NCBI GenBank assembly: GCA_037379345.1
Contig: CM074518.1
Coordinates: forward strand, 38,219,586-38,283,585
DNA from: Perna viridis
Lineage: Eukaryota
Length of the DNA stretch: 64,000 bases
Direction of reading: 5' to 3'
In this document: in pieces, positions 205 to 38,183 of the stretch
Position numbering within the stretch: the stretch's first letter is position 1
How the letters are laid out: each line of letters begins with the position of its first letter
Translations under genes and position numbers: made by a program
The notes under the pieces: model-generated
Told to the model about the DNA's origin: nothing
Seen by the model: only the letters and a program-made list of their open reading frames with translations
The model's database searches: none

Positions 205-408
205 TTGACCCAATTCTCAACATTTATATACTCGTTACGTCGCTATACAGATACTGTATGTGCTGCTGTTGGCTTTAAAACCAATGATAGGAGGTCAAAA
301 AGTATTATTAATGCCAGATGTGAACGTGCATGTACTTCTGTTTTGCACTGTTTCATGAGTTTCTCGGTAGCGAAGCAGTTGCCTTTCGTATCCATTTTGC
401 TAGTGTAG
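205..408 (+). pseudogene. Decayed CRD zinc-finger cassette, paralogue of cassette 2
   Basis: 1-400 aligns by eye with about 1790-2200, including the intron (ggaattatttgtttaccgaatt...ctttcag|ttgaccca). Many small deletions break the Cys frame (atactgtatgtgctgctgttgg versus atactgtataatgtgctctgttgttgg). Confidence 0.8.
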
Positions 409-814
409 GGGAATGAATCACTTAAATTGTACCATAAGTGCTATACTCCCAAAGTAAATTTAGATTGAATTTTTTGGGGGTTTAACTTGAATCAGTTAAG
501 AATAAGGAGACAAAAAAATACCACTTTGATTCTGGTCAAATGCTTATCCTGTGTCAAATATCTATTAGAGATCTAACTTCAAAGCTGTATTAAGTTAGTA
601 TAGTGTCCATACTTGCACTAACTGTTCAGCGTTCAACATGTGCGGTCGTATCAAAGTGCGCCCCGCAAAGCATTTAATAGTTTAAGTAGATTTGAGTCTT
701 TGAAGTTGTTTCGAGTTCGTAGTATCGATTCATTTTGAAAGCGATAGAATATTGTATGGTTTGGGCTTAAAATGTGTGAAATTCCAAGTTTATTTCTATC
801 GTTTATCCTTTCAG

Positions 815-1137
815 AGGTCTCCGACAATAGAGGTAGTCTATTTTTTACAAACCAACACGTGTTTGTCCGTGACGACACTGGTAGCAACAAGGCCTGTCTG
901 ATGTGTTCAGTTTTTGGCAATAAAACTAAATGTGGAGATGCTAGGAAGACGTATTATAAATGTACAGCTTGTAACGTTTTCTTGTGTAAAGGTGATTCGA
1001 ACTGCTTCAGAAATTTCCATCTTCTGATGGGAGAAACCGCTGTTACGATGCATGGAAGTCGTAGAGAGTTGCGGCAAACATTAGCATCAAAATACAATGA
1101 ATGGTGCAGTAAAACTACTAAAAATCCCACCGAATGA
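815..1137 (+). CDS. Cassette 1: putative alternative terminal exon, piggyBac-type CRD zinc finger
   Basis: Acceptor tttatcctttcAG at 813-814, phase 1. HVFV..CLMC-x18-CTACNVFLCKGDSNCFRNFH plus C-terminal tail. Stop at 1137, AATAAA at 1276. Confidence 0.85.
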
Positions 1138-1972
1138 CAATATAATATCTTTGATGCCTGTCATTGTATTCTCCGTAATTATAAACATAGTAACAGTATG
1201 ATAGATAAGACCTGTACATTCTGATTTACTTTCTCATTGGACGCGTATTGAACGCATATTTAAAGTATATAGTTGAATAAAATTACTATAACTACTAGCA
1301 CTTTGAACATTTGATGCCTTGGTATAAACACTTAAATTTTGTTGTCGTTGGAATCTTCGTGTGATCAGATCTTCTCCAGTACACTTAGTCCAAAATTTAA
1401 TGAGAACATTGTCAGTGTAGATCTAAATGATACTCCTGCATTCGAAATTTAGGATAAATCGCTCTCTGGACTCGATGCATAGAGTTTGATGTTTTAAAAC
1501 AAATATTGTCGCTGTGTTACTTCGTCAATCTGATTTATATATTCCCACTCGACTATCAGATAGTAGATTGGAATCACCCCGTCAACCTGTTCGAATTCCA
1601 TCTTCATTATCATTGCTTGAGTTTCATCTCAATTATCTTTGCTTCCACTGATTGATCCACTTCAAATTTGTTTTGTGGCTTTATTTAGGTGGAACTGAGT
1701 TTGCTTGTTGTTCGATATCGACAGCCTGTTTTGTGGTACTTTCCTATTTTACTGTATGGAACGAGATTGGGGTATATATTAGAAACATCATGGTCATGTT
1801 GAATTTGCCCCTTTAGATACGTATGTTTGTTGTGCTTCTTTCTGGTATCGGTATATCATGGTGCTAGCATTGTATCAACTAAATACTTGCATTATTTTTT
1901 TTTCTGGAATCGATGGAGTATTTCGTTGTTATTCAGGAATAATTTGTTTACCGAATTCGTTTTTACTTTCAG

Positions 1973-2268
1973 TTGACCCAACCAACCTGTCGGTTTCAAT
2001 GCAACATTTATGTACTCGTGACGTCGTCAACAGATACTGTATAATGTGCTCTGTTGTTGGCAATAAAACCACCAAAAGTAAGGAGGTCAAAAAGTCGTAT
2101 TACAAATGCCAGATGTGTAACGTGTACTTGTGCAGGGGTGAATCTAACTGTTTTGCCTTGTTCCATGAGCTTCTTGGTAGCGAAGTAATGACTTTTGTAC
2201 ACGACAGGTCGACGACCAAACAGATATTGAAGGCGAAGTATCAGCGCTTGTTCCGAGAACACAATTGA
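1973..2268 (+). CDS. Cassette 2: CRD terminal exon
   Basis: Acceptor ttttactttcAG at 1971-1972, phase 1. CIMC-x19-CQMCNVYLCRGESNCFALFH. Confidence 0.85.
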
Positions 2269-2527
2269 GGTGTTAGGTAACTGCCACGTGACTTGATTTC
2301 ATGGTGTAGGGAACTCATTCTAACTGATCGACTGCATTTGTTTTGAACTACTGTGTTGTCCTATCTATATGAAAGAAAGTTGTATAGCTAGACATGGCTA
2401 GTATTCAGTTAAAAGTACGGAACTATTTCTTCAGATACTAGTGTTAGCTACTTTGCTGTCTTGTATGTGCAATGAATGATATTTTTTAAAGTTGCGCAGA
2501 TATGAGAAAAGTGCTTCTTTCTTTCAG

Positions 2528-2925
2528 ACGTTTCCAGGAATAAAAGAACTGACGAAAATCCTCAAGCACAGCACAGACTTGTGTATACTGAAGAAAAACG
2601 ATTAAGAAAATGCGTTTATTGCTATCATAAAAATGTGAAGACTTACAGCGGACATGCTGTGACGTCATATTTCCAATGTCAGGCTTGTGGAGTTGCTTTG
2701 TGCAAGACCATGCGAACTTGCTTTGTTGATTTTCATAAGTACATCGAGGAATCTGGTAACCCGATACAAATCGTTGATGGACGAAGGAATCGGTCTATCA
2801 AGTCTGAAGCATGCACCATTCCTTCGTTTAGGTCGGATGGTCGATCATCTGTTGATACTTGTACCCAAGATCCTGCACAAGAATATACTTATTGCATCAC
2901 CCTATCCTCTCCTGAATCTCAGTGA
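2528..2925 (+). CDS. Cassette 3: CRD terminal exon
   Basis: Acceptor cttctttctttcAG at 2526-2527, phase 1. HRLVYTEEKRLRKCVYC-x18-CQACGVALCKTMRTCFVDFH with a long tail. Confidence 0.85.
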
Positions 2926-3341
2926 TGTGGTCCCTGTTATTGGGTGCTCAATGAAAAAGGTTGAGGTTACATCATATTAACTTGAGTTGGCATATAAACT
3001 GTATCATAGACTTGTAAAAAGATGAAGGCAAAATGATTGTCTATATGTTGAATGAATAATGGTCAAATAGCAAGGAGTTGACATATAAAGGCGGGACTGA
3101 AATGGCGGGAAAGGGTTTTATTTTTACTTAAGTCGTGAAGACCCGATTGTACCTTCGTAGAAAATAACTGCTATACATGGAAGTTTGTCATTGACATGCA
3201 ATTATTATATATAATAGCTAGTGTAGAAACCTATACGTGTAAGAAACTCGTTAAAATAACATTAAACACATCTTGCAAGTTTTATGATTAAGCTGAGTTA
3301 GTTTGTAAAATGTTGACATTGGATCTGTTTTCCATTTTCAG

Positions 3342-3640
3342 ATCCACGAACTATAGAGACTGCAAAATCTAGCGATTTTTTCACATTCAAAGGAAACAAA
3401 CCAATATCCCTCCAGCAGTTACAATCAGTTGGTCATTTCATTGTTCCCACGTTTGAGAGAAAACTAAGACCTTGTATTCTTTGCTCTATGTGTAAAGTAA
3501 AAACGAAGTCTGGATGGCGTGTGTATACACGATATAAATGTGCTGGTTGTGACGTTCCATTGTGTACCAAACACCGAGACTGTTTCTTGATCTATCATAC
3601 CACTCTTCTTCAACACGCAGAGTCTTCAAACTTGTCTTGA
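3342..3640 (+). CDS. Cassette 4: CRD terminal exon (absent from the ORF track)
   Basis: Acceptor ttttccattttcAG at 3340-3341, phase 1. Manual translation: (D)PRTIETAKSSDFFTFKGNKPISLQQLQSVGHFIVPTFERKLRPCILCSMCKVKTKSGWRVYTRYKCAGCDVPLCTKHRDCFLIYHTTLLQHAESSNLS*. Confidence 0.85.
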
Positions 3641-3814
3641 GAAAAGGAACTTTTTGCTAATAAAAAAGCATATTGAAAAAAAAAGTATATGATAGTTTTT
3701 TGAAGATTTTTTCTGACATTTGACAGTTCTTACCGTCGTTTATGATTGTATAAATAGTGTTGGTTAGTTAATAATAAAAGCATTATTCAGTTTAACTATC
3801 GTTTTCCCTTTCAG

Positions 3815-4110
3815 AATATGCCGACAAACGATGCCATAGCCATAGAGATTTATTAGTTTGTTCATCCGTTTCTACTCTTGGAGCAATGGGTCACGTGTTA
3901 GTGAATAACCCGGATGGAAAGGCTAAGGCTTGTGTTTATTGTCTGAAAAATAATATCAAATCTAAAGCCGGATGGAAAGTTTATACTCGGAACAGGTGTT
4001 TGCTATGTGATGTTGCCTTGTGCACAAAAAACAGGCCATGTTTTTACCTACATCACAAGCCTTTATTAGACAACATAAATACATTTGGAACTGATTTACA
4101 GAAAGATTAA
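3815..4110 (+). CDS. Cassette 5: CRD terminal exon
   Basis: Acceptor ttttccctttcAG at 3813-3814, phase 1. GHVLV..CVYC-x18-CLLCDVALCTKNRPCFYLHH. Confidence 0.85.
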
Positions 4111-5049
4111 CTTATTTGGAAGTTGATAGTAAATTCAGTCTAAGCATGCTTAAGCTGTATAATTAGTCTTTTGTAGTTGCTTATTGTGATCTGATTGATA
4201 TTTTTACACTTTACGAACGGTCATCACTTTTAAAATTTTGTATATGTAAGAAATACTTGACTGATAAGCTAGAAGACGGGTTGATACAAATATGGCTTGT
4301 AAGTCTTGTTACTTGATCATGTGAATTCACGAGAATGGGTGAGAGTTCAAACTCCAATACTAAAGCTTACGAAGTGGTTCTTCATAGAGTAAAGACTACA
4401 ATTTTATCAATGAAACTGTCTTATGCACAAATGTTATTTTAAGAGTATGACGCTTCAAAATATTTTACTTTCTGTGATAGAACGATTAATCGAGGGGTGG
4501 GGGGAGGGGGCATTTTTTCTATGCAATGAGGGGAGAATAGGTCTGTCGGCTCTTGTTTGATCATAGTTCAATATCACTTCTGAAAAATTGACATTATAAC
4601 TCTCAAGTTCACGCATGATGGTTGTGATGGTTGTTTTACATTATTTACTACAATGTAAATACTACGAACCTAGATGAAAACCATACTCATATCTTGCAAA
4701 TATAATGTTCAGACATTGTTCAACGACCATTATCTTAAATCACAATAATACGCTGAGAGCAGGAAGTCGTCTGCTTTTTAGTGCTCCTCATCCATATGTT
4801 AAAGAATTAATCGAATGGAATTATTTTTTTAAAATTGACTTCAGTTTCGGTACAATAGTTTCATTTTTGTTGTGATAAGTACTTTGTGGAATAATTATGG
4901 ATCATTTTCATTGAGAATTCTGAGTAGTGTTGCTTAGTAGTATAATGGATTCTTTCGGCGTTCAGCAGCCACTTCCGCTCAGTATTATTAATAGTAAGGG
5001 TTTTACGTAACTTATTTGTTACACAAGACAACTTCAATAAAGCTAAATT

Positions 5050-5262
5050 TACTATTGCAAACTTATTAATTTTTGCGGGCTACTAATTTTCTCTATTTTT
5101 GCGGTGGACAGATAAGGAATAAAATAAGGACCCGCGAAATTTATTTTTTACCCTATAAAACGTTAATCATATGTGAAACCGCGAAAGATCATACCCGCGA
5201 ATATGCTCATTTGACAGAATCCGCGAACATTAACAACCGTGAAAATTGATACGTTTACAGTT
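5050..5262. mobile_element. Degenerate MITE-like repeat with internal CCGCGAA motifs
   Basis: Imperfect ends (tactattgcaaac ... gtttacagtt), ttttgcgg motifs on the left and repeated ccgcgaa on the right. Confidence 0.45.
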
Positions 5263-5503
5263 ATCTTAATAATATTCTCAGAAGTATTGACTGCATTTTT
5301 AAATTGGTGACGCTATTGGTAATGTGAAATATTTACCTTTGTAACTACATGTCCCATTTTATCGTACGGTTCCAGACCCGACTTTCATCTGCCTCTTTTA
5401 CTGTTTGTTTTCATCTGATTTTACCAAGTTGAGCTCGCTAAGTCAAAACAGAGAAAACATTTCTGTTTACAGTGTTGATACCTTTTTGTTTTCTTTGTTT
5501 CAG

Positions 5504-5802
5504 ACCAATCTGGCCAAAGTATGGGGACTCTGCCATTTTATCCATATACGGGACAACGAATCGATAGTGCATCATGGGAAAAACTGAAATCTTTAGGCCA
5601 TTGTATCACACCGACAGAGGGTCGGAAAGTTACTCCTTGTGTTTATTGCTCTATAAATTCTGTCCGTTCTAAGACAGGGCGTAAAACCTACACAAGAAAT
5701 AAATGTGGGCTTTGTGATATACCGCTTTGTACAAAAAATAGAGACTGCTTTAATCTTTTCCATTGGTCGGTATTGGAGAAAATATTTGAGGGTTCAGGAT
5801 AG
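5504..5802 (+). CDS. Cassette 6: CRD terminal exon
   Basis: Acceptor ttttctttgtttcAG at 5502-5503, phase 1. GHCIT..CVYC-x18-CGLCDIPLCTKNRDCFNLFH. AATAAA at 5910. Confidence 0.85.
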
Positions 5803-6849
5803 ACATAACGAATGGTATTACTGCTTTTGAACAGTCATTTGAAAAAAAAAAAATGAAATGTATATGTATAAATGTCTGTACAATTTGTATTGGGGATATA
5901 TCGGTTATAAATAAAATTAGTTTGTTTTTTTTTTCTCTTGATATGATTATTTAACCAGATATTATAGGTTTATTGTTAACGTCATTTACCAAGCCACGTG
6001 TTGATTTCTTGGGTTTGAGCCGGGAGGAGGATTGTTAGGATTTTTCCAACTGTCCTATGGGTCTTGTCAAATGATCAATGATGGAAAATTGCATCGATTA
6101 ACCTGTCCGATTCATAATCTTATGAAGCCATACCTCTAGATGCAAAAATAATTTAATAATCCATAAGATACCATGAAAACTTCCCCATTCATAAGGAGAT
6201 AACAACAGAAACATTTCCATACCCATAATGCATCAAGTAGTTTTACCCCACTCATTAGATTCGGACATATATTGCTATAGCCTAATCCGTTCATCTTTTT
6301 GTTTCACTTTTCTGTAACAGATTTATCAGCTTCTACTGGAGGGAATTCTTAGATATAAGGTATATTGCTTTTGCATGATGACTTTTTTTACTTTGCGTCG
6401 CCTTTACAGATCATTGCTTATCTACTTCCTGTCTGTCCTATGACTTAATTTGACAGAATTTGGTTACAAGGGGCTATCTTAGCACGATGTTACGTTTAAC
6501 TTCTTGTTGAAATTCAGTGTAAATGTTGCTCTACAGTCTTGTCAAAGTGTGTAGGTATCAGGCGTGCGAAGATTTATATGGCTTTGCCGAAAGGCAAGCA
6601 TGTATTGCATGGTAGTAGGTGTTTCAAGGACGCGAAGGATCTAACAAGGTCAGCTTTCTTTTGAGTAATGGCTATTTGCAAACATTTGACATGTGCTGAT
6701 AGTACGACTATATTTTCCTAGATATCTTTTTAGACTTTGTCGATTATCTTGGAATACTTCGCCCAATTTAGAATACTTCAGTTCAAAATATGTAACTTGA
6801 TTTTAGACGTTTTCTTGGTAATTTGAAGTTGGTACGTTTTACCTTTCAG

Positions 6850-7133
6850 GGATGATTGCTGTCCCATCAGATATAGATAACAGGCTTGCTAATATACAAT
6901 TTTGGAGGAGTCTTGGACACAATGGCGGCGACACCGAGGGAAGGAAAGTTCGTCCCTGTAAACTCTGTAGCATGCAAAATATTCGATCAAGTTCTGGACA
7001 GAAGGTCAAAGTTCGCCATCGTTGTCTGGCTTGTGACGTACCTCTCTGTATGGGACAGAGAGATTGTTTTTACCATTATCACCAATTGCTGTTTAGCACA
7101 AAAAGTGCTGAACCGTCAGTTGACATGAAGTAA
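6850..7133 (+). CDS. Cassette 7: CRD terminal exon
   Basis: Acceptor ttttacctttcAG at 6848-6849, phase 1. CKLC-x18-CLACDVPLCMGQRDCFYHYH. Confidence 0.85.
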
Positions 7134-7305
7134 TTTAAGTGAGTCCATTTAGGTTACGGTCGACTGGCGAACATTTCGGACCGAAAACCATATGAACGTT
7201 TTTAACTGTATGAATGGATGATCATGTGTATTTTGTTGTCATGTTGATGAAAATGGTCGTCTGTTTAAATCAAATGTTTACGATCCTCTCAATTTTTCCT
7301 TTCAG

Positions 7306-7568
7306 ACACGGATGGATTTTCCCCAGATTACAAAGAAAGATTGGAAAATTTACAATCTTGGCAAAATCGTGGACATATTGTTGTCGATACTGATGACAAA
7401 AAAGTTCGAATATGCAAACTTTGTAACATGAACAATATCCGTTCTTTGTCAGGGCAGAAAATCAGAGTTCGTCATCGTTGTCTTGGGTGCAATATTCCAT
7501 TATGTGTTCGTCAAAGAGACTGTTTCTATAAGTATCACTTAGCGATTTTTAATCAGTCAATAAGTTGA
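7306..7568 (+). CDS. Cassette 8: CRD terminal exon
   Basis: Acceptor tttttcctttcAG at 7304-7305, phase 1. CKLC-x18-CLGCNIPLCVRQRDCFYKYH. Confidence 0.85.
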
Positions 7569-7758: not shown

Positions 7759-8045
7759 ATTTGGTACCCAAAATCTACATCAACCCACGTTTAATGACAA
7801 CAAAGGATGATGCTTTGAGAATTTTATCTATTCAGGGTCATACGATAATTGATACAGAAGAAAAACGGCTAAAACCCTGTGTTGTGTGTGCCGAGCGTAA
7901 CGTTCGATCGCATCGGGGCCATTGTATACGAATTCGCCATCAGTGTTCTAAATGCCGAGTAGCTTTGTGTATTGGATATAGAGATTGTTTCACCGCTCAC
8001 CATCAGTCCTTATTAGATCCAGATTGCAAATCAGATATCATTTGA
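7759..8045 (+). CDS. Cassette 9: CRD terminal exon
   Basis: Acceptor tttttattttttccAG at 7757-7758, phase 1. CVVC-x18-CSKCRVALCIGYRDCFTAHH. Confidence 0.85.
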
Positions 8046-8175
8046 AACGTTGAAGTAGTCATTAATACGAAACAAATTGAGTATTTGGATTCATCTTTTT
8101 TTTTTATTTGGGCAGTTACGTATTTTAGTTTTTTCTTCACAAGGATTGAAATGTTCCTTTTGTCTATATTTTCAG

Positions 8176-8438
8176 ACATGCAATATCTCGGGGAGAGTAC
8201 TCGTTGTTCCAAGGATAATCGAGCTTACTGTCTCCAAGCTCTTTCCTTATATGGTCACAGAATTGTCGACACTCAAGGGCAAAGACTTCGAGCGTGTGTT
8301 GTGTGTGCTAGTCGCAATACTCGATCTAGATTTGGACTTAAAGTTAGAATAAGGCACCAATGCTCGAAATGCGGAGTTGCATTATGTGTTGGGAAACGTA
8401 ATTGTTTCTCAATCTACCACGATTCTCTTTTACAATAG
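8176..8438 (+). CDS. Cassette 10: CRD terminal exon
   Basis: Acceptor tctatattttcAG at 8174-8175, phase 1. CVVC-x18-CSKCGVALCVGKRNCFSIYH. AATAAA at 8504 and 8517. Confidence 0.85.
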
Positions 8439-9781: not shown

Positions 9782-10065
9782 GGTTTGATCCATTTGTATT
9801 ATCTTGCTATGCGACTGATGTGCAACAGAGAGCTAAGAAAAGAGAACAAACACAACAGCTTGCCAATCTCGGGCATGCTGTAGTTGATACGTTCAGTAAA
9901 AGGAAGAAAATATGTGTACAGTGCCTTAAAAACAATGTCCGTGCACCGTCAGGAGAAAGAGTTCGGGTGCGACAGCAGTGTGGGACATGTAACGTTCCGC
10001 TTTGTGTTGGATTCCGAACCTGTTTTGTCGATTTTCATAAAGCCCTTCTGGACAAACATTCTTAA
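9782..10065 (+). CDS. Cassette 11: CRD terminal exon
   Basis: Acceptor ttattttatctttcAG at 9780-9781, phase 1. CVQC-x18-CGTCNVPLCVGFRTCFVDFH. AATAAA at 10404. Confidence 0.85.
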
Positions 10066-11043: not shown

Positions 11044-11345
11044 ATTTACCAGCCCTTCAACAAATGGCATCAAAAACCGATGGGTTACCGATTGATCTTG
11101 AACAAAGGAAATACTTTGAGCTTGATCATAGACATTTTATGACATTTTTAGAAACCAAGGGCCATATTATCGTAAATACCATTGACTGTAAATTAAAACC
11201 GTGTAAATACTGTTCTAAGTACAAAATAAAAACGAAATCCGGATATCTAGCAAGGACCAGAAACAAATGTTATCTATGTGATGTTCCTTTGTGCACGAAA
11301 AATCGTGATTGTTTTTACCAGTACCACAAATCATTTATTCAATGA
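11044..11345 (+). CDS. Cassette 12: CRD terminal exon
   Basis: Acceptor tttctttctcctttcAG at 11042-11043, phase 1. CKYC-x18-CYLCDVPLCTKNRDCFYQYH. AATAAA at 11390. Confidence 0.85.
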
Positions 11346-11419: not shown

Positions 11420-11697
11420 GCTTGCACGATATTCCTTTCCTATCGTCTGCTATGGTGGAAATGAACCAGATATCCCATGATTCCATGCGCGAACATAAGC
11501 TTGTTCCGCTGGAACACAATCGTAGGAAGAGATGTAAATATTGCCAAATACGGCGGGTGAGAACAGCTGCGGGTGGGACATCTGAAACTGCCTACCATTG
11601 TCTGGCTTGCCAAATACCTTTGTGCCCCGGAATTAGATCAGGAAGGGATTGTTTTATCAAATATCACAAGGAATATATATTTCCCAGTCAAACTTAG
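11420..11697 (+). CDS. Cassette 13: CRD terminal exon
   Basis: Acceptor ttgtttccttgcAG at 11418-11419, phase 1. CKYC-x18-CLACQIPLCPGIRSGRDCFIKYH. AATAAA at 11979. Confidence 0.85.
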
Positions 11698-12725: not shown

Positions 12726-13009
12726 GTAACATGGATGGAAAGCCGTCACAACTACATCAATTAACTTACAGTTCAGCCAAAACTGGTATACCGGGTCATA
12801 ACGTTGTACCGACTGATGGACGGAAACAAAAACTATGTAGATATTGTCGCGCTTATGAGAAAAAGTCACCTTCCGGTTGGAAAATCTTGACGCGCTCTAA
12901 ATGTGAAACTTGTAATGTTCCGTTGTGTCAGGATGTTCGAACTGAGAGAAATTGCTTTAGATTGTTTCATGAGGAATATGTGTTTGGAAAACAATTCAAG
13001 TTTATGTAG
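12726..13009 (+). CDS. Cassette 14: CRD terminal exon
   Basis: Acceptor tatttcttcttgcAG at 12724-12725, phase 1. CRYC-x18-CETCNVPLCQDVRTERNCFRLFH. Confidence 0.85.
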
Positions 13010-14144: not shown

Positions 14145-14431
14145 GTAGTGGTACCAGTTCAAATGTACAGGTCATTCCTCAGAAAAATCCTCCTCCGTTG
14201 TTACGAGTAACATCTAGTCTTGAAGGTCATGAGTTAGTCCCGAATGATGGTTTCAAACAAAAAATATGTCACTTTTGTAGGATGACTGGACAGAAAACTG
14301 TTTCTGGCTGGACAGTTTTGACTGGAACTAAGTGTTCATTGTGTAATGTTCCACTTTGTAGGGGTACAACCCGGCCTCACAGAGAGTGCTTCAGATTATT
14401 TCATGAAAGGCTTCTATCCCAGAATCAGTGA
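14145..14431 (+). CDS. Cassette 15: CRD terminal exon
   Basis: Acceptor ttcttttattttcAG at 14143-14144, phase 1. CHFC-x18-CSLCNVPLCRGTTRPHRECFRLFH. Confidence 0.85.
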
Positions 14432-14745: not shown

Positions 14746-15032
14746 TTGAATATTTGTTGACAGAAAAGAAAGCGAGTTATCCTCTTCCGGGTCAAAGGTT
14801 ACAGTCGCTATTAGAACTAACTCCGAAGGGACACCATTTGGTTACTACGGAAGGGTATAAACAAAAGGCATGTCGGTACTGTTCTTTAATAGGAAGGAAA
14901 ACCTCTACAGGGAACACTATTTGGACTCGTGTCAAATGTTCCGTCTGTGATGTACCGTTATGCCAGGAGACAACTAGAACACAAAGACAATGTTTCAAGT
15001 TGTATCACGAAAAAATTAGTTACTCGGATTAG
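14746..15032 (+). CDS. Cassette 16: CRD terminal exon
   Basis: Acceptor ttgttctcctttcAG at 14744-14745, phase 1. CRYC-x18-CSVCDVPLCQETTRTQRQCFKLYH. Confidence 0.85.
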
Positions 15033-15808: not shown

Positions 15809-16212
15809 ATCCCTGATCATTGGAGGTAATATTCCTATTGTTTATACTATCCTTGATCATTTGGTAATATATCTATAGTTTATACTAGCTTTTATCATTG
15901 GAGGTAATATTTCTAGAGTTTATACTATCCTTGATCATGGAAGGTAATATTTCTATAGTTTATACTATCCTTGATCATGGGAGGTAATATTTCTAGAGTT
16001 GATACTATCCTTGATCATTGGAGGTAATATTTCTAGAGTTTATACTATCCTTGATCATGGAAGGTAATATTTCTATAGTTTATACTATCCTTGATCATTG
16101 GAGGTAATATTTCTAGAGTTTATACTATCCTTGATCATGGGAGGTAATATTTCTTTTGTTTATATTTTCTTTGTTCATGGGAGGTAATATTTCTATTGTT
16201 TATACTTTGCAG
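15809..16212 (+). repeat. 40-bp minisatellite, about 10 copies, running into the cassette 17 acceptor
   Basis: Unit ggaggtaatatttctagagtttatactatccttgatcat(t/g). The last unit ends tatactttgcAG. Confidence 0.95.
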
Positions 16213-16412
16213 AAGCGGATGTTTTAATGCATAGGTTGGTGCCGAATGAGGGACACAAGCAACGGAAATGTAAACAATGTAAAAGAAATCGGGTCCGGAC
16301 CAAAAAAGGATGCCGTGTTAATACAAGATTCCACTGTGACTTGTGTAACGTGCCACTATGTCGGGAGCGTAACTGTTTCCAGCAATTTCATCAACAATAT
16401 CACTTTCAGTGA
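16213..16412 (+). CDS. Cassette 17: CRD terminal exon (shortest)
   Basis: Acceptor tttatactttgcAG at 16211-16212, phase 1. HRLVPNEGHKQRKCKQC-x18-CDLCNVPLCRERNCFQQFH. Confidence 0.85.
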
Positions 16413-16777: not shown

Positions 16778-17037
16778 GCTACACAGTGTCAGAGACTTCA
16801 TTTTGGTACTCTTTTGACTCCATGAATTCTGGTATTCCTGGACATAAAATTATTCCAAACGAGGGTCATAAACAAAAGAAGTGTAAACAATGTCAGAGAA
16901 GTAAGAGGAAAACTAAATCTGGTTGGCAAGTAGCGTCAAGGTTCCGTTGTGAGAGTTGTAATGTTTCTTTGTGCCGTGATAATTCTTCTAAGAGGGGCTG
17001 TTTTAGACAATATCATGAGGAACTTGGCTTGATATGA
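16778..17037 (+). CDS. Cassette 18: CRD terminal exon
   Basis: Acceptor ttgacgttttgtAG at 16776-16777, phase 1 (a second in-phase cAG lies at 16785-16786). CKQC-x18-CESCNVSLCRDNSSKRGCFRQYH. Confidence 0.8.
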
Positions 17038-20705: not shown

Positions 20706-20944
20706 AAGAAAAAAATGGAATGAGTTGCATGGTTAGCGGAAATGACGAGAAACATCATCATAGACTGGTTCCATTAGGGTTTGGAAAGCAGAGAACCTGC
20801 AAACAGTGTAGGATTTTAAAATCTAGAACCCGAACCGGACTCCGGATATTTACCAGATACAAATGTGAAGCATGTGATGTGGCTTTGTGCAATCCCTTTT
20901 CCTCTGACCGGAATTGTTTTTTCGCATACCATCAGCATTCGTAA
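20706..20944 (+). CDS. Cassette 19: CRD terminal exon
   Basis: Acceptor cctgtttctttgtAG at 20704-20705, phase 1 (TAGAAG tandem acceptor). CKQC-x18-CEACDVALCNPFSSDRNCFFAYH. AATAAA at 20943, 21240 and 21379. Confidence 0.85.
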
Positions 20945-22738: not shown

Positions 22739-23274
22739 GTGCTCGTCTTCCAGCGAGAGGTGCCAGATTGTCTAGACAAAGGTACCCGCCTAGAGATAAC
22801 CGTTTCTACTCCCACGCGCTCCAAGAACAGACAAGCCAAATAGGGCAGTATGGGCAAGGTTGTATGGAGGATAGTCGATGGATTAATAGAAAGCCTTCTG
22901 GTGTAGGTGGTACTCAAACATCTTACGACTCGAGTCGTTTGCAAGTTTACCAAAATAGCCAAAAGGTCGATGGTGGTATCTCCAGACCTTCCGAAAATAA
23001 ATCTTACATACATCCAGTCCAGTTGCAGGGTCTAGATAATTTGCCTGGTCATAAAATTGTCCCGGTGGAAAAGAAGACTGGGATGCGGTGCCTTTATTGT
23101 CAGATCCACAAAATAAAAACTCCTTCCGGTTGGAGGGTCAAAACCAACTATAAATGCGAAACGTGTGGTGTACCCCTCTGTTCCAAAGAAGTAACTGAAC
23201 GGAATTGCTTTAGATTACACCACATAGAGATGTTTGGCGATACCATTCTTGAATCAGAGGAAAATCCGTTTTAG
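22739..23274 (+). CDS. Cassette 20: CRD terminal exon with long N-terminal linker
   Basis: Acceptor ccttcctcattgtAG at 22737-22738, phase 1. About 100-aa Q/S/G-rich linker, then CLYC-x18-CETCGVPLCSKEVTERNCFRLHH. Confidence 0.8.
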
Positions 23275-24121: not shown

Positions 24122-24507
24122 ATAGCAGCATTTCTAAGGAACCTTCACCGTTCTTGTTTGGAGACACAGACAAAAGGGAAGACGTCATACGAAATTTGCA
24201 CCGGAACGAAATCCCAGAAGACACTATTCACGGCGAGCAATCTCAACGAAAATCGTTACAAAATTTACCATTTTCCAATATGCCCGAGGGTCATTCCCTT
24301 GTTTTGGTAGGGATCAGTGAGAAAACTGGGTGTGTGAAACAAAAAGACTGTCGCTACTGTTCGAAGTACAGTGTAAAAACTAAAAGTGGATACACTGTCC
24401 GTACACAATATAAATGTTCCGGATGTGATGTTGCACTTTGTTCTGGTGAACTTACCGGTAGGAACTGTTTCGTTCTGTTTCATAACGAACTTTTCCTTGG
24501 CGTGTAG
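24122..24507 (+). CDS. Cassette 21: CRD terminal exon
   Basis: Acceptor ttttgacctttcAG at 24120-24121, phase 1. CRYC-x18-CSGCDVALCSGELTGRNCFVLFH. Confidence 0.85.
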
Positions 24508-24978: not shown

Positions 24979-25331
24979 GACAATTGTACTACCCAACAGG
25001 AAATAGACCAAGATTCGTACAGAAGAAACACTTGCCATCAGATGATATTCTCGGACAAAGCTCGCTTCATTATTCGTACCCATTTACCAAGGAAAATCTG
25101 CCAGAGGGACACAATCTTGTCCCTATTCCAGACAACAGGAAGAAAGACTGCAAATTCTGTCGTCGTCATAATATTAAAACAAGGAGAGGATATTCCGTAC
25201 AAACTCAATACAAATGTGCTGTCTGTGATGTGGCGTTATGTTCAGGGGTGTACAATAATAGGAACTGTTTTGTAGACTTTCATAACGAAACCTACATGAT
25301 CCAAAGAAACATTTCACAAACAGACATGTGA
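24979..25331 (+). CDS. Cassette 22: CRD terminal exon
   Basis: Acceptor tatttgacgttacAG at 24977-24978, phase 1. CKFC-x18-CAVCDVALCSGVYNNRNCFVDFH. Confidence 0.85.
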
Positions 25332-27016: not shown

Positions 27017-27393
27017 ATGGCAGTAACGCTGTTTATGGAGCTCATGATTTTGGAGTAGGTGGGGATGGCTTACCTGGCCAAATACACAATGCACATCTGT
27101 TGTCTCTATCTGAAATTCAGAGAGATCTTCCGATAACTTTTTCCAATTTCCCGGGAACAAATCCGATGCCTTTACCGGAATTTTCAGGGGGCCATCGGCT
27201 TGTATTGACGGATGGAAGGAAATTACGGAATTGTCATTACTGCGAACAGCATTGTGTCAAGACTAAAAGTGGATATACCACACGGACTAGATATTATTGT
27301 CAAAAGTGTAACGTGCCATTGTGTGTTGGTCGATACAGGAACAGAAATTGTTTCGTTGATTATCACAATACGATGAACCAAATAAATGATTAA
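27017..27393 (+). CDS. Cassette 23: CRD terminal exon
   Basis: Acceptor tttgactattacAG at 27015-27016, phase 1. CHYC-x18-CQKCNVPLCVGRYRNRNCFVDYH. AATAAA at 27445. Confidence 0.85.
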
Positions 27394-28721: not shown

Positions 28722-28996
28722 AGTATATACAGAGATTGTTTGACCAGCCTAATTTAGGTCCCATTCCTATTGGAGATATGTCTGACCACCCATTGGTCCA
28801 TATCAACGAGAAGCGCACGCAAAGGGACTGTAAATACTGCCAGATCCATAAGATAAAGTCAAAGTCAGGGTTGCGTCTAAAGACTTTGTTTAAATGTGCA
28901 AAATGTAACGTGCCCCTATGTGCCGCACAAAATACGGACCGACACTGTTACGTTTTGTTCCACAATGAGTTTATATTCGGATATTCTCATATGTAA
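28722..28996 (+). CDS. Cassette 24: CRD terminal exon
   Basis: Acceptor ctttgtttctttcAG at 28720-28721, phase 1. CKYC-x18-CAKCNVPLCAAQNTDRHCYVLFH. AATAAA at 29083. Confidence 0.85.
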
Positions 28997-32662: not shown

Positions 32663-32988
32663 AATTAACCACTCTACAGATGATAAACATGGATGATATA
32701 ACAGTATTACCTTTATCCGACTCCAGAACTCGATGGAATATGAATAGAAAATTTCACATACCCGGGCACCAAGTGGTACCCATTGGAATGGCAAATGAAC
32801 AGAGGGACTGCAAGTACTGTCAAAAGAAAAAGATTAAAACGAAACGTGGATGGAATGTGAAAACTAAATTTAAATGTGATAGGTGTAACGTAAATCTGTG
32901 TTCCGGTGACATGACGTCACGAAATTGTTTCGTTTTGTTTCACGAAGAGTTTGTATTTGCTGGTAATCAGAATCCTTATACCACATAG
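32663..32988 (+). CDS. Cassette 25: CRD terminal exon
   Basis: Acceptor ttctactttttcAG at 32661-32662, phase 1. CKYC-x18-CDRCNVNLCSGDMTSRNCFVLFH. Confidence 0.85.
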
Positions 32989-34189
32989 ACTTGAAGTGAC
33001 AATTCATTTATTCCCATTTTGATTTGGGTGTATGTAATTAAGATTTCAGTTTTAATTTAGAGAGTGCGTAACTTATATTTGCGCTGAATTATTTTTAGAA
33101 TTTTAATCGAAGTTTGAAAAAAAAGAAACATAAAATGGGGTGACTGACGACATATTAGGGAACTACTATTTGATTTTTTAGGTAGGAGGGGGTGCTAGGA
33201 TCAAATTTGAAATATAAAGGCAGAATTGTTTTTTTTTTTTTAATAAAAGGTCAGGACAGGCCACAAGTAAAAAAAAGGCAGGATAGAAAAAATGATCCTA
33301 GCCTTCCCTAAAAATTAAATGGTTTCTCCCTTACTTTGAATATATATGCATGTCCATATAAAGAAATGAAACTGCATGACTTCAAGGAGAACATCACTGC
33401 CTTGATAAACAAAAATATTTTGTTCACACGTATAGTATAAGTTACACTGGATAAGAAACTTGATGTATGACCTAGCTCCTATTGTACAATTAAATACCAT
33501 TCCCTTCAGGTATCATGTGTTTTCTGTTATTTGAAATTTCTTAATAAATTATTACAAAATCGTGTCTCTCTCGTGGTATCGTTTCTCGACGTCTATCAAT
33601 TTTTGCTGTCACGTACGCTGTATTTATTAGTGTACCATTCAGTCTTAGTCGCATGAGTAATAGACTTCTACGCTGTATCTTTTGTCACATTTCATAGAAC
33701 TATTGACAGTCACCTACATGTATGCCACATACATGTACATAAGATTGCCTGCTATTGCATTGAACTTGACCGTTTGCTGCCATAACTGTCACTTATTTCT
33801 TACAAGTAGAACTGTTTGGAATCTCCTTTGTCACACTTATTTCAGGGGCGGACACATGAATTAAAGAATCGGAGGGTGCGCCGACATATTGTGGGGGGGG
33901 GGTCATCGTAACTTAATTTGCTTTCATTTTTTTCGAAATGGTAGAACCGCCTTTGGATCAAAGATTTATAGTTGCGGCTTTTTGTAATATAGTAGAACAG
34001 CCTGGTGTCATAATGCCACATTGATAAGCACCACCTGTTTTCATTCGTCCTCTTATTTTAAAAAAAAAATCAGATAGTTGCGCTGAAGGTCCAACTGTCT
34101 TGCAATAAACATAGCCACAATCTGTCATTTTGAACACAGTAAACAAAACTATACTTGCTATAACTGAGGAAGTCACAATGATAAAATAA

Positions 34190-34432
34190 CCTGCCTGCTA
34201 ACATTTTGTCACATTGGACAGAACCAATTGTTTCACTATTGAACAGAACCAGAACTTGCTGTCGCTTTTGTCACACTGAAGAAAACCATTAGCTTGCTGT
34301 CACTTTTTTCATGCTGAACAGAACCTTTAGCTTGCTCTCACTGTTGTCACACTGAACCTAAACCTGAACAAAACCCTTAGCTTGTTGTCATCTTTGTCAT
34401 TCTAAACCTGAACAGAACTCTCAGCTTGTTGA
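34190..34432 (+). repeat. Degenerate tandem repeat, about 35-45 bp
   Basis: Recurring gcttgctgtcac-ttttgtcacactgaacagaacc. Confidence 0.7.
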
Positions 34433-34699
34433 CAATCAATCATTTTACATTGCGTTATGTTTCGTTAATTCGAGGACCTCATTTTATCACTGACGTCACC
34501 TTGGTTAAAAAAAAACTATTATTTATGGGATCACATGATGATACTTAGTACCCCGGTCACACTGTCAAGCAAGAGAAATGTTCATGAACAGATCATTTTG
34601 ACAGACATGATCGATTTATTTGTAAAAATTACTACAGATATTCTGAAATTGTCGAAAAAATAACAATTCTGAACAACATTATTTTGTTCACGATCAAGC

Positions 34700-35880
34700 T
34701 GCAATACTTGACATCTATTTTCGACGACCACTTTCAACCTTATAGCTAAAGTACAACATATTCATTTTCCTGTTGTAGCACAATGCCTCAGGAAACCATA
34801 GTCCATCATTAGCAGTTAGAAACGTCTTGAACTGTTGACTAAATCGCGGTAACAATGTCAAATGGTTCGATGAATATCCAACGACATAAAGGATTTCGTG
34901 ACTATCAACGCATATGCCGTGTGGCCATCGAATTTAGGAATTTACAATATTTTCCCCCTGTTGTGGAGCAACATGTGATTTTGTCATTTTTCCAATCGGT
35001 GTAATATATCCTGTCTTTGAATGTAGTTATGTAATTAACATGATCAACATCCACACTCAGAGTGTTCTAAACAATACCCGATTCATCGATCATCGCAACA
35101 CCCTTTCCTTTTACTATTACATTAAGTCACCCGCTTTGGTAGGATACTCCATAGCATTCTCCGCCAGGTCGGACTTTCTTTTTGATCTTCTTCTTTGGTG
35201 CTGACTAAGATTATTAGAACTTTATCTTTATATGTAACAGCAATACGGTCCACATCAATTACAGCTACATTGCAAACGGAAGGCTTAGCAGGACCGAAAA
35301 TGTCACACACATGGTGGTCATCTTCGGTGTACTTTGTTAGCTTGCCGTTGTACTCAGTGATGAACAATCTACCATCTCCTGACAAAGCGCACCCGATGAT
35401 AGCCTTGTTGCTAGTACCTATTTGTATATCAATGACTTGTTTTGAGCTTAGCTCGATTTCTAGACTAGATATATCAATTTGAGCTTGATTTAAGTCAGCG
35501 TGTCTGTACACTATACTAGGTGTCGTATCCATCACCTGGATATCACCAAAAACTTTGGATATCTTTGATTATAGATGAAATAGATGAAATAAATTTTCAC
35601 CTGAAACATGAATAACTTTGATACGTTTAGTGTATTTTTGAGACAGTCGATATTTCTTGTAAAAGTATTTCTCATTTGTCGAACAGCTTAAAATAATACG
35701 ACTTTGGATGCCGATTCTTGAATATGAATGAGAGAGATTTTAATTTGTGTGAATTCTTCATTAAAGGACCTCAAACTGTCTAGTATTGAGGGGCACTGTG
35801 CTCGTCAGTCTTTGTATTTTTCTTCAATATCCTCTAAAAGTTGTTTTTCTAGTCGGTCTAGATGTTTATCTAATTGTTCG
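34700..35880 (-). pseudogene. TRIM-like / NHL beta-propeller pseudogene, antisense within the array
   Basis: ORF 35122-35535 (IIGCALSGDGRLFITEY..VAVIDVDRIAVTY) continues after frameshifts as ECYGVSYQSG*LNV..IDESGIV*NTL..DRIYYTDWKNDKITCC and WPHGICVDSHEILYVVGYSSN..DGLWFPEALCYN. These are NHL-like repeats with in-frame stops. The 5' limit is approximate. Confidence 0.75.
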
Positions 35881-36033
35881 AGGACATTGCAAACTTATTT
35901 TTAAAATCCTGGCCGTTTTGGCCCTAGGAACATTTTCGATAATACCATTACCATGGTTTTCTGGACGGTCTCTTAGATGTTTGGTAGGATGAGGATCGAT
36001 TTGTACCACTAGCAAAGTTTCGTAATAGGAATG

Positions 36034-36207
36034 AAGTTTGGGTAGAAGTTGATAACAAGAGAGACAAAGTGTAAAACATGGTCAGATTAACAAGTTTGGG
36101 TAGAAGTTGATAACAAGAGAGACACAGTGTAAAACATGGTCAGATTAACAAGTTTGGGTAGAAGTGGATAACAAGAGAGACACAATGTAAAACATGGTCA
36201 GATTAAC
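36034..36207 (+). repeat. 58-bp tandem repeat, 3 copies
   Basis: aagtttgggtagaagttgataacaagagagacaaagtgtaaaacatggtcagattaac. Confidence 0.95.
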
Positions 36208-36897
36208 TCTGTCTAGTACAATACAATTTTATATCCTTCATTTTGTTTATGTTTGTCTGGTGTTATTTCATTATTCTACTTTTACTTGCGCAAACGGCCA
36301 AGGCATGTTATAAATCTTTCCCTATAATTTCAATTTTGGATCAGTCGATTTTAAGCCTAAATAGCGATTATTTGGGTGTCAATTTAGCGTTCATATACTT
36401 TTAGTTATTCTATCACTTTTGTCAAATGAAATATGCGAGATTTTTTTAACTTGTTACATAGATAAGGGTCGTGGATGTCGCGTGATGTCAGCGATATTTC
36501 AATATCGACCCCCCTCCTCCCCCCCCCCGAAAAAAAATGGATTGCAATCAATTATTTTCTCAGTTTTGCACAAAGAGTAGTGGTCCTACACCGGACTCTC
36601 CTGCGAACAGTGTTGTGTTAAACTTTACCCCATGCCAATTTCTCTCGCTTATGTAGTTCCAAGGCTCATTTTCCTGTACGATGGTTTTAATGTTCTATGT
36701 TCATGCTACGGTAAAATTTTTGGTCACTACTCATGCATTACCTATAACATATCATCATTCAATTGTTTTTCACTGACCTGAATTTTTCCCTAAGACAATG
36801 ATGCATCGAGACTGTTGCAACTAAATATGTAAACAAAAACAAAACTAAACAAAATGTATACTGTCGTAATGTGATATCGCCTATGATTTCAATACCT

Positions 36898-37069
36898 GCA
36901 GGGCCGGATCCAGATACTTTGAAATGGAGGGGTACCAGCCGAGTTCCTCAGAAAAAACGGGTGTTAGGACATTATTTGCCACTTTTTTTTAAAATTTTAT
37001 ACGAGAAAGGACAAATTTTCCCATTAAAGGGGTTCTAACCCCATGCACCCCCCTATGGATGCGCCGCTG
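36898..37069. mobile_element. Short MITE, ggcggatcc-type TIR family
   Basis: caggggccggatcca ... tggatgcgccgctg. Internal ccagccgagttcctcagaaaaaa is shared with 23628-23655. Confidence 0.6.
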
Positions 37070-37636
37070 ACCTCAGCATTCAAGATGTCATTGATAATAA
37101 GTTTGAATCCCCCATTTTCTGTTCAAATAATTATTTCTTTTGTTTTGTCCTTAATTGAAAGATTGTAGTACCGTTAAAATAACGACAATGTAGCCTGTTT
37201 TAACCGAACCATGAATAAACCGAAACCTAAACAAGACACTTTTGGTATTCCCTTTATTTAAGAATTGGCAATAATAAAAATTTTGTCTATTGAAAAATAA
37301 CAAAAATTATCCATGTGCATATTGTTTATTGCGCGAAAGTCAAAAATATTTTGTACATGTACCTATTAGGAGTCCAAGGTCAGGTCCAGAGGTTTTGAAA
37401 AGGGGGTTAATTGAGGAGGTCTCAGCAAAAATGAGGCTTCGGACTATTATTTGCCCAATTTTGCGTAAATGTTGCACGAAATTAAGAATGTTTTCGAATA
37501 AAAGGGGGTCCAATCCCCTGCATTCTTTACTAGAGTCCGTAGAATATAACAAATGTTATGCAGGGTCTGCTTGTTTGGTCTTGAAAATGATCTCGCCCTG
37601 AAATTTATGAAATATCTGTCATGGGACGTTAAACTA

Positions 37637-37664
37637 CAATCAATCAATCAATCAATCAATCAAT
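37637..37664 (+). repeat. (CAAT)n microsatellite
   Basis: About 7 units. Confidence 0.9.
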
Positions 37665-37842
37665 GAGTTGTATACTGGTATTTGAAAACCAGGCATCTGA
37701 GCGTCTTTGGTAATCGGAGCTACTTGTTTCCGGTATAAGTAGTAAAATGGTATACCCGTTTTGTGTTGCTATGCATGCGCATTAAGCGGTGACATTTGAT
37801 GATAATGTTATATGATTAATATTTACAACTTGTTTGTTGCAG

Positions 37843-38183
37843 ATCAAAATGAAATGATTACACCACAATTATTTCCTGATGATATGGCTTTCCTCTCTAC
37901 ACAACAGGAGCTGCTGGTTGGAGATACAATGTCAAAACAGGTACCAGACAGGACGAAAAAAGGCTTTCAAATATATGGACACAAACTGGTACCCACGGAC
38001 GACAGAAAACAGAAGTTGTGTAGATATTGTCGGGCAACGTGTCAAAAGTCTCCGTCAGGACGTAGAATTCTGACAAGATCGAAATGTGATACATGTAATA
38101 TACCATTATGTATGGACGGAACAACGGAAAGAAACTGTTTCCGATTATACCATCAATTTCTTTTTAAACATACATCTACCTGA
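37843..38183 (+). CDS. Cassette 26: last CRD terminal exon of the array
   Basis: Acceptor cttgtttgttgcAG at 37841-37842, phase 1. CRYC-x18-CDTCNIPLCMDGTTERNCFRLYH. Confidence 0.85.

Follow-up and report, generated by a model that had tools for sequence, protein, structure and literature searches.

Cassettes for a piggyBac-type cysteine-rich domain as putative alternative terminal exons of a BTB-domain gene in the mussel Perna viridis

The 64,000 nucleotides of Perna viridis DNA analysed here (the window) very likely form the 3' variable region of a single BTB-domain transcription-factor gene, in which small cassettes encoding a piggyBac-type cysteine-rich domain (CRD) are alternative terminal exons. 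Splicing and expression in Perna viridis are inferred from the sequence and from relatives. Positions are window coordinates (w), negative values lying upstream of the window. The window contains 26 intact CRD cassettes, all on the + strand, and one dead cassette. A regex search in the six reading frames of the window returned 25 cassettes, on the + strand only, and an HMM built from these recovered the 26th at 16188-16409. With this cassette HMM the cassettes score 53-100 bits, and all 26 in the window have E values of 1e-15 to 1e-30; no match below E=0.5 was found on the minus strand of the window or beyond 38183, to 64000. The 6 kb adjoining the window upstream hold three further intact CRD cassettes, which brings the total to 29, together with one basic cassette and one C2H2 cassette (w -6047..-5752), the sole C2H2 cassette beside the 29.

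The original prediction of 26 intact same-strand cassettes was upheld by the two scans together, although the array proves larger. It had placed the start of the array at 205; the element there (205..416, + strand) is not an intact cassette but a dead, degenerate copy of the cassette at 1783, with 68% DNA identity to window 1795-2199. Cys and His are missing from its translation, so that its zinc ligands are lost, and it reaches merely E=9 with the cassette HMM. The predicted minimum spacing of 74 bp, from a stop to the next acceptor, held, some cassettes being 74-190 bp apart. The claimed lack of a consistent ATG held as well, Met occurring within the first five codons in only 6 of the 29 cassettes, as did the lack of per-cassette TIRs, the inverted repeats that flank cassettes being no longer than those in controls. 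Also confirmed was the absence of a transposase core: PF13843 (piggyBac DDE) has at least 120 matching fragments genome-wide and none in C8:38.12-38.29 Mb. With no PF13843 in the locus and no TIRs above controls, a reading of the cassettes as a piggyBac transposon or transposase gene was rejected.

The zinc-ligand set of the cassettes, H-C2-C2-C-C-H, comprises eight ligands and is invariant in 29 of 29; the invariant columns of their alignment read H, C, C, C, C, L, C, C, H, with a mean pairwise identity in the core of 40%. Three lines of evidence show that this domain is a piggyBac CRD, as had been predicted from its likeness to zf-Tnp_2. Pfam PF13842 (zf-Tnp_2) exceeds its gathering score in nine of ten cassettes tested (26.7-37 bits; cutoff 24 bits), the tenth reaching 21 bits, and 16 of the 18 matches to this family genome-wide are in this locus. 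A profile of the cassettes run against the PDB finds residues 518-574 of the piggyBat transposase, its CRD, at E 7e-6. Finally, an AF2 model of the 12726 cassette (pLDDT 78.6) matches the piggyBat CRD with a VIA Z of 5.8 over 57 residues (rmsd 3.0), the next row having Z 2.4; with Foldseek the fold match to a solved piggyBac-family CRD attains an E-value of only 0.11. A Saccoglossus transposase with both DDE and CRD scores 85.7 bits on the cassette profile. The CRD cores carry net charges of +5 to +13. Binding of zinc and of DNA is inferred. The mussel domain resembles the CRDs of piggyBac transposases (PF13842; piggyBat 9c0f, PiggyMac 6zop) in Pfam family, in ligand pattern, down to the upstream His, and in predicted fold, but differs in that it occurs without a transposase, is spliced onto a BTB and is strongly diversified between the ligands.

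Each cassette has an acceptor and its own stop codon. Ten of those with a phase-1 acceptor have the following HMM scores: 815..1137 (72 bits; PF13842 29 bits; acceptor tttcag|), 1973..2268 (55.5 bits), 3342..3640 (89.6 bits), 5504..5802 (81.6 bits; pyrimidines 18/20), 6850..7133 (85.1 bits), 7306..7568 (84.3 bits; the Pfam score of 21 bits is slightly below cutoff), 7759..8045 (72.9 bits), 9782..10065 (79.5 bits), 16213..16412 (74.2 bits) and 24979..25331 (92.1 bits). The cassette at 16213 has a short loop and all eight ligands and is the one that the regex scan overlooked and the HMM caught. The cassettes at 24122..24507 and 32663..32988 are supported by Pfam and the cassette HMM, the former also by acceptor scoring. 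At 2528..2925 (76.7 bits; Pfam 27 bits), a cassette with a long C-terminal tail, the phase-1 acceptor at 2528 is outscored by a phase-2 AG at 2538. In the last cassette of the array, 37843..38183, whose core is 76% identical to that of the 12726 cassette, the phase-1 acceptor likewise scores below an AG that is out of phase. Two acceptors remain uncertain. For 22826..23274 (93.3 bits) the candidates, 22754 and 22826, are both weak and in phase 1, and for 27188..27393 (88.2 bits) the frame is open from 26899 and the top-scoring AG is out of phase. The cassette at 11044..11345 has an AATAAA 45 nt past its stop, and the next acceptor follows 74 bp on, at 11420..11697, the first member of a long-loop subfamily. 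Several cassettes lack a canonical polyadenylation hexamer nearby; for example, none was found within 1.5 kb of those at 14145 and 14746.

A shared constant N-terminus had been postulated, as in mod(mdg4) and lola, and is present. At 12-15 kb upstream, and sharing the strand of the array, there are three coding exons: an ATG exon (w -15480..-15352), an exon encoding the BTB, identified by Pfam in w -14352..-13120, plus a disordered region (about w -14349..-13123), and an acidic exon, exon 3 (w -12611..-12260), of net charge -19. The ATG exon reads MNYQKVYMNQIHSSSLL... and contains no FxLRWN; the nearest solved relatives of the BTB are BCL6, Miz-1 and BACH1. The acidic exon ends in a phase-1 donor, AGAG|GTAGGC. 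Among 38 cassettes the best-scoring acceptor is in phase 1 in 34, compared with one third expected by chance; in the other four (2528, 27188, 32663 and 37843) an out-of-phase AG scores better. The match of this donor to the phase-1 acceptors, together with the BTB exons upstream, supports the predicted isoform generator of the lola/mod(mdg4) kind. It is supported as an analogue, shown in relatives and by the logic of the sequence rather than by Perna viridis RNA.

The relatives show the isoform structure. Mytilus californianus has an ortholog, LOC127705185, with at least 40 RefSeq isoforms, which are automatic models. Scallops and oysters share its junction motif, as do Logan mRNA contigs. In all 15 of the M. 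californianus isoforms examined, the constant part ends in ...NPLGGFR and exactly one CRD cassette follows, and 10 of these 15 ends have a clear one-to-one Perna viridis ortholog at 65-84% identity. The cassettes at 3815..4110, 8176..8438, 12726..13009 (99.7 bits with the HMM), 14145..14431, 14746..15032, 16778..17037 and 20706..20944 are orthologs of isoforms X30 (75%), X32 (66%), X23 (79%), X26 (65%), X28 (72%), X34/X35 (67%) and X20 (78%), respectively. For isoform X18, whose protein is XP_052065431 (P0001), the alignment runs through the three upstream exons in order, with identities of 95%, 69% and 71%, and continues at 69% into the orthologous cassette, 28722..28996. In other bivalves, mRNA-like contigs carry the BTB plus one CRD within a single ORF; one such contig (L014) is 3147 nt long, with one ORF and an AATAAA close to its end. 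On a Logan contig from another species (P0146), the neighbours 11044 and 11420 again occur side by side. The original prediction knew of no such locus in molluscs. No published description was found in the literature searched, but the locus has already been annotated automatically in several bivalve genomes.

The supposition that one host gene had amplified this module required correction. Upstream of the BTB gene is a head-to-head, mirror-image paralog with its own array of CRD and BEN cassettes, which keep to their own strand and side, and another paralog carries a single CRD.

Selection on the cassettes is supported by ligands that are invariant at 40% core identity, by the one-to-one orthologs and by a dN/dS of 0.17. 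The last value comes from a single pair of recent duplicates, the cassettes at 815..1137 and w -709, and rests on only 12 substitutions. Unlike this pair, the duplicate of its neighbouring cassette, the copy at 205-416, has decayed. For 17 of the 29 cassettes the best match lies within two array positions, in support of local duplication. The source of the CRD would be a piggyBac-like transposase, plausibly captured by 3'-exon trapping as in CSB-PGBD3, although capture is inferred. In such a history the captured CRD would have lost its DDE core and then multiplied by local duplication in tandem, some copies being gained and others lost.

In the gene model that we propose, the constant part would start with a non-coding first exon, probably near w -37.2 kb, and the donor of the acidic exon would be joined to exactly one of about 30-31 alternative terminal exons, each with its own stop. 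The variable part would comprise one C2H2, one short basic and 29 piggyBac-type CRD cassettes. The dimerising BTB and the acidic region would then be common to all mRNAs, and each product would end in a different two-zinc DNA-binding module, small and strongly basic. The choice of cassette is inferred to be made in cis, where splicing would compete with polyadenylation. If this is true, one promoter would give rise to about 30 factors that differ in their DNA targets; DNA binding and its divergent specificity are likewise inferred.

A first rival keeps this architecture but derives the mRNAs from trans-splicing, after the model of Drosophila mod(mdg4). The cassettes would be transcribed as separate pre-mRNAs from their own promoters, and the transcript of the constant exons would be joined to them in trans. 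In its favour, trans-splicing is reported as the origin of every mod(mdg4) isoform (PMC13490949). In addition, the longest cis introns would exceed 50 kb (donor w -12260 to acceptor 37843), and cassettes only 74-190 bp apart are awkward for independent 3'-end formation in cis. On the other hand, all 29 cassettes are downstream of the constant exons and on the same strand, and the cassettes of the head-to-head paralog also keep to their own strand and side. With this placement in both genes, plain cis splicing suffices. Nor does the intron upstream of the cassettes contain any conserved motif apart from the acceptor consensus. We therefore regard trans-splicing as unlikely.

A second possibility, which seems to us remote, is that the cassettes are independent small genes for free CRD proteins, or exons of several different genes. 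In its favour, gene callers report many stand-alone proteins of CRD type, 80-280 aa in length, in other assemblies, and a Met is found close to the start of 6 of the 29 cassettes. However, the cassettes share no consistent start codon, and each open frame starts from a polypyrimidine-AG acceptor, with the phase-1 preference described above. In addition, both the RefSeq models and the mRNA-like contigs show orthologous cassettes attached to BTB exons. The stand-alone proteins are an ORF caller's rendering of single exons. Finally, the array might have no function, being a graveyard of piggyBac insertions that have decayed or a pseudogene fragment that arose by segmental duplication; the DDE fragments elsewhere in the genome and the one dead cassette might point this way. 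This reading is all but ruled out by 29 intact open frames on one strand with invariant ligands, by the lack of a DDE core and TIRs, by one-to-one orthologs across mussel genera and the dN/dS of 0.17, and by the resident transposase CRD, to which the cassette HMM gives only 28.7 bits, whereas the cassettes reach 53-100 bits.

The reading that we prefer, alternative terminal exons of a BTB gene, has its closest parallels in two Drosophila genes, lola and mod(mdg4), which belong to the TTK group of BTB loci and have 20-30+ alternative 3' exons. In those loci, too, a constant N-terminal BTB is followed by one of many terminal exons, each with a different small zinc-coordinating DNA-binding module; the number of isoforms is similar (about 30-40), and several types of DNA-binding domain are mixed in each array. 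The mussel array differs in having a piggyBac CRD as its variable domain, rather than FLYWCH (mod(mdg4)) or C2H2 (lola), and in having no antisense cassettes inside it. The FxLRWN motif defines the TTK-type BTBs, an arthropod group, and is reported to be absent from Mollusca (PMC11426971). By this criterion a TTK-type assignment of the mussel BTB was rejected, and because FxLRWN is missing the mussel gene is an analogue of lola or mod(mdg4) and not an ortholog or family member.

Two further comparisons concern the origin of the variable module and the overall plan of the protein. In fusions of the CSB-PGBD3 type, host N-terminal exons are spliced to a piggyBac-derived terminal exon with its own stop and polyadenylation signal (PMC5381638). 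The mussel cassettes are similar in having their own acceptors and stops and in the BTB fusion seen in orthologs and mRNA contigs, whereas the mussel gene keeps only the CRD of ~60 residues, without the DDE core, and has multiplied this module about 30-fold within the gene. The vertebrate ZBTB factors BCL6 and Miz-1/ZBTB17, whose BTBs are among the closest solved BTB sequences, likewise pair an N-terminal classical dimerising BTB with a DNA-binding domain at the C-terminal end, across a long disordered linker. Each ZBTB gene has one fixed C2H2 array, whereas the mussel gene owes its diversity to alternative terminal exons and to a finger derived from a transposase.

The region analysed comprised the window, C8:38219586-38283585 on the plus strand, and the 120 kb upstream of it; coordinates are those of the window, with negative values lying upstream. 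A six-frame regular-expression scan for the C2-C2-C-C-H pattern identified 25 cassettes, all on the plus strand, and an HMM built from these first 25 recovered another at 16188-16409. On the minus strand and beyond 38183 no match to this HMM was better than E=0.5. The original prediction, made from sequence alone, had described 26 intact same-strand cassettes with an H-C2-C2-C-C-H signature. Both claims held, the latter because the columns H, C, C, C, C, L, C, C and H are invariant in an alignment of 29 cassettes, among which core identity averages 40% with a minimum of 24%. Positions 205-416 hold a decayed copy of the 1783 cassette (68% DNA identity) that has lost its ligands. Four further claims were confirmed. 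Spacing is as tight as 74 bp, the shortest distance between a stop codon and the acceptor that follows it. There is no consistent ATG, a Met occurring within the first five codons in only 6 of 29 cassettes. No terminal inverted repeats accompany individual cassettes, since inverted repeats flanking them are no longer than those of control pairs. Finally, no DDD core is present; of 120 genome-wide matches to the piggyBac DDE core, C8:38.12-38.29 Mb contains none. The locus does contain 16 of the 18 PF13842 (zf-Tnp_2) matches of the whole genome, and nine of ten cassettes tested passed the gathering score of that family, the tenth reaching 21 of the 24 bits required.

A tblastn search with 145 related proteins revealed no cassette types in the window other than CRDs, and no coding ORFs were found from 38.2 to 64 kb, the only notable frames being those of a satellite. 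This 1.35-kb satellite, at 41137-42487, is built of 36-bp units with a higher-order periodicity near 150 bp (72-77% matches); it mimics long repeated HGMGNFWG open frames when translated and is non-coding. Between the dead cassette and the 815 cassette, at window 409-690, lies a dispersed repeat of about 280 bp, probably an inserted SINE or MITE, of which at least 35 copies at about 75% identity are scattered over many contigs of this genome. In another species a Logan contig encodes a single 247-residue open frame (P0146) spanning orthologs of the 11044 and 11420 cassettes, and the adjacency of these two is therefore conserved. The first cassette may lack a stop codon in that species, or the contig may represent an unspliced or extended transcript.

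The cassette profile aligned with the C-terminal CRD of the piggyBat transposase (residues 518-574 of 578; E 7e-6), with the upstream His and all Cys matched. An AlphaFold2 model of the 12726 cassette (mean pLDDT 78.6, core above 88) gave piggyBat 9c0f as its top Foldseek match (E 0.11), with the PiggyMac CRD ranked seventh, and VIA-align superimposed it on piggyBat 510-571 with a Z of 5.8 (rmsd 3.0, 57 residues, 26% identity), compared with 2.4 for the next row. The HMM and structure checks thus agree with Pfam, and the piggyBac-type identity originally proposed for the domain can be accepted with high confidence, on the basis of profile and predicted fold; binding of zinc and DNA is inferred. 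Among 1.84 billion representative proteins the profile matched 1297 at E<=1e-3 and 367 at E<=1e-10. The top matches are mostly stand-alone ORFs of 80-280 amino acids, the form that single exons take when gene callers count them as genes. One of the top matches, a true transposase of Saccoglossus with DDE_Tnp_1_7 and a CRD, scored 85.7 bits on the profile. On the cassette HMM the cassettes score 53-100 bits, and the CRD of a resident piggyBac-like transposase ORF (L015) only 28.7. The CRD cores carry net charges of +5 to +13, which would fit nucleic-acid binding, although there are no binding data. The CRD of piggyBac transposases recognises sequences near the transposon ends, and for this reason the cassettes are most simply viewed as alternative DNA-binding heads with different targets.

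Searches run exon by exon placed the constant part of the gene upstream of the window, on the plus strand. The ATG exon (-15480 to -15352) ends AAG|gtaaaa and is preceded by an acceptor, so there must be at least one non-coding exon further upstream. The BTB exon (about -14349 to -13123; PF00651, E 1.8e-10, profile positions 23-106) also holds a long S/P/Q-rich stretch. It is followed by an acidic exon (-12611 to -12260, net charge -19), which ends in a consensus phase-1 donor, AGAG|GTAGGC, at C8:38207325. Before its CRD cassettes the gene has two terminal exons of other kinds, both with phase-1 acceptors. One, at -6047 to -5752 (L004:3953-4248), encodes two fingers matching Pfam zf-C2H2. The other, at -4031 to -3883 (L004:5969-6117), is an arginine/lysine-rich cassette of 49 codons with AATAAA about 80 nt downstream.

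To score acceptors, every AG in the open frame before the first CxxC was rated by a simple pyrimidine-tract score in 38 cassettes: the 29 plus-strand CRDs, eight minus-strand CRDs of the neighbouring gene and the C2H2 cassette. The top-scoring acceptor was in phase 1 in 34 of the 38, compared with one third expected by chance; two acceptors remain uncertain. The usual acceptor sequence is ...CCTTTCAG|, and since donor and acceptor each supply a G, the codon at the junction (G, D, E, A or V) is identical in the mRNA and in the genomic frame. The 250 nt preceding each of the 29 same-strand CRD acceptors and the C2H2 acceptor were scanned for k-mers. No selector or docking motif emerged, only the CCTTTCAG acceptor consensus, which was no commoner than the top background k-mers.

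The joining itself is seen in relatives. A search with the BTB exon returned 175 proteins, all from pteriomorphs (Mytilus, Pecten, Argopecten, Mizuhopecten, Magallana/Crassostrea, Ostrea, Saccostrea, Pinctada and Tegillarca). Many are labelled "isoform X.." and combine PF00651 with PF13842; others carry C2H2 or HTH_psq. The top match, M. californianus LOC127705185, is 68% identical and its isoform numbers reach X40. All 15 of the M. californianus isoforms checked share the constant part up to ...NDPNNPLGGFR and then continue with a linker and exactly one CRD, and in these automatic RefSeq models the point of divergence is the junction predicted in Perna. One of them, isoform X18 (P0001), aligns in order to the three constant exons (95%, 69% and 71%) and then to the 28722 cassette (69%), which implies an intron of 41 kb passing over 26 cassettes. 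For 10 of the 15 isoform ends the array contains a clear single ortholog, with 65-84% identity and far ahead of the next match; five lack one. The junction motif WY(I/M)GxF(K/R), followed by G, D or E, recurs in proteins from scallop, oyster and Logan contigs of 2-3 kb. One contig of 3147 nt (L014) contains a single 648-codon ORF with a BTB domain and one CRD, and AATAAA 41 nt from its end; being too small for genomic introns, it must represent a spliced mRNA. When residues 612-707 of P0128 were used alone as a query there was no match, probably owing to a word-index limit, and this says nothing about relatives. The evidence consists of automatic models and assembled contigs of relatives, with no RNA from the species itself. 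The shared constant N-terminus that had been proposed is upheld by the upstream BTB exons and the phase-1 donor; its joining to the cassettes remains an inference in Perna. As a whole, there is little doubt that the feature is real and that the original prediction was correct in outline.

Despite deep divergence, all ligands are retained in 29 of 30 copies. The recent duplicates at -709 and 815 differ by 7 synonymous and 5 non-synonymous changes (dN/dS 0.17), a small sample from one within-genome pair; orthology with Mytilus was assessed at the protein level only. About 65% of the flanking sequence of this pair can be aligned, and the duplicate of its neighbour is already degenerate. For 17 of 29 cassettes the closest relative lies within two array positions. 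This similarity between nearest neighbours is local, the relation of distance to similarity across the whole array being not significant (rho -0.10, Mantel p 0.10). The last loop has 5-6 residues in a proximal block, up to the 11044 cassette, and 8-9 in a distal block, with 16213 as the exception.

We propose that a single promoter would produce a pre-mRNA whose constant donor may be spliced to any one of about 31 acceptors, and that the stop codon and 3' end would come from whichever cassette is chosen. The encoded protein would be a dimer-forming BTB factor (the nearest solved BTB domains are those of BCL6, Miz-1 and BACH1) with an acidic region and one basic two-zinc C-terminal module. Since all cassettes follow the constant exons on the strand of the gene, cis splicing coupled to alternative polyadenylation is the economical model; trans-splicing of the mod(mdg4) kind cannot be excluded. 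A bolder reading, which we consider improbable and in which both binding and role are inferred, likens the CRD bank to the vertebrate KRAB zinc-finger genes, as an evolving surveillance against piggyBac-like transposons. Each cassette would keep or retune recognition of the end sequences of one piggyBac family, the shared BTB module would bring repressors to those ends, and cassette birth and death would follow the transposon load. In its favor are the five Mytilus isoform ends without a clear ortholog in Perna, the recent duplication of which one copy is already dead, and a genome with at least 120 piggyBac fragments. Compatible with it is the conceivable notion, for which there are no binding data, that the piggyBac CRD is a single-module DNA reader, reprogrammable in nature and existing in hundreds of variants (367 clusters at E<=1e-10).

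In its proposed working the locus resembles lola and mod(mdg4), and the likeness originally drawn to these genes holds in that sense, not as family membership. The TTK group to which they belong is defined by FxLRWN, which the Perna BTB lacks, and that motif is reported to be absent from Mollusca (PMC11426971). Their variable domains are FLYWCH or C2H2; apart from one C2H2 cassette, the Perna locus uses neither. The CSB-PGBD3 3'-exon trap (PMC5381638) is similar in origin, but Perna keeps the CRD alone and has amplified it afterwards. The locus is already visible in automatic annotation, and no description of BTB-CRD arrays was found in the literature searched. Neither BTB nor molluscs appear in a 2017 review of piggyBac domestication; a 2025 screen for fusions between TE and host domains covered the BTB and PGBD4 zinc-ribbon InterPro entries without discussing the combination in the text consulted; and a survey of oyster transcription factors noted BTB gene clusters and not this architecture. 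In a protein atlas, 10% of the members of an arthropod "lola-like" cluster carry zf-Tnp_2. This lead is unverified; if true, it would be relevant to the choice between a convergent and an ancient layout.

Single BTB genes with large sets of alternative DNA-binding ends have been regarded as peculiar to arthropods and their TTK-type BTBs (PMC11426971). The bivalve layout is assembled from a classical BTB and a transposase-derived finger, which suggests at least two origins of the design. The locus is also an unusually large domestication of a transposase domain, with about 30 copies in one gene and two adjacent arrays, and is conserved in mussels, scallops, oysters and pearl oysters. With 29 variants in one gene and hundreds across bivalves, the capacity of this small domain for specificity becomes testable. 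Many orphan "hypothetical proteins" of 80-280 amino acids in mollusc assemblies would also be explained as single exons of such genes.

The second array belongs to a head-to-head paralog, the ortholog of M. californianus LOC127705183, with exons on the minus strand at -38711 to -38842, -39232 to -40401 and -41781 to -42062. Its array extends leftwards to -79.8 kb (minus strand, -79843 to -44633, stretches L008-L011) and contains two BEN-domain cassettes, one of them matching the end of a Mytilus BTB protein at 65% identity, eight long-linker CRD cassettes and two long non-CRD exons of unknown domain (-64761 to -63568 and -61934 to -61551). An inverted repeat of 642 bp (-37741 to -37100; L007:2259-2900) is situated between the two genes, with arms of 141 nt each, 91% complementary and 360 nt apart. 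A GTAGGTG donor faces outward in each arm, and GCCATgtt-like motifs occur in the interval between the arms; a shared bidirectional promoter with twin non-coding first exons is a possibility.

Eleven BTB exons of this subfamily are detectable in the genome, all on C8, at 2.99, 3.03, 9.30, 24.45, 24.89, 38.12, 38.18, 38.21, 42.89, 43.26 and 48.43 Mb. Of these, the cluster at 38.1-38.3 Mb and the gene at 43.26 Mb alone have Pfam-detectable CRD exons; in the latter a single CRD exon lies 1.8 kb downstream of the BTB exon (L016, C8:43.25 Mb). The remaining genes probably use other DNA-binding cassettes. A third BTB copy in the vicinity (-100301 to -98930, minus strand; L013, L017) has no CRD in the next 20 kb and a BTB open frame of only 143 amino acids. 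Its ATG and BTB exons are 86% and 92% identical to those of the plus-strand gene, and it may be a truncated duplicate.
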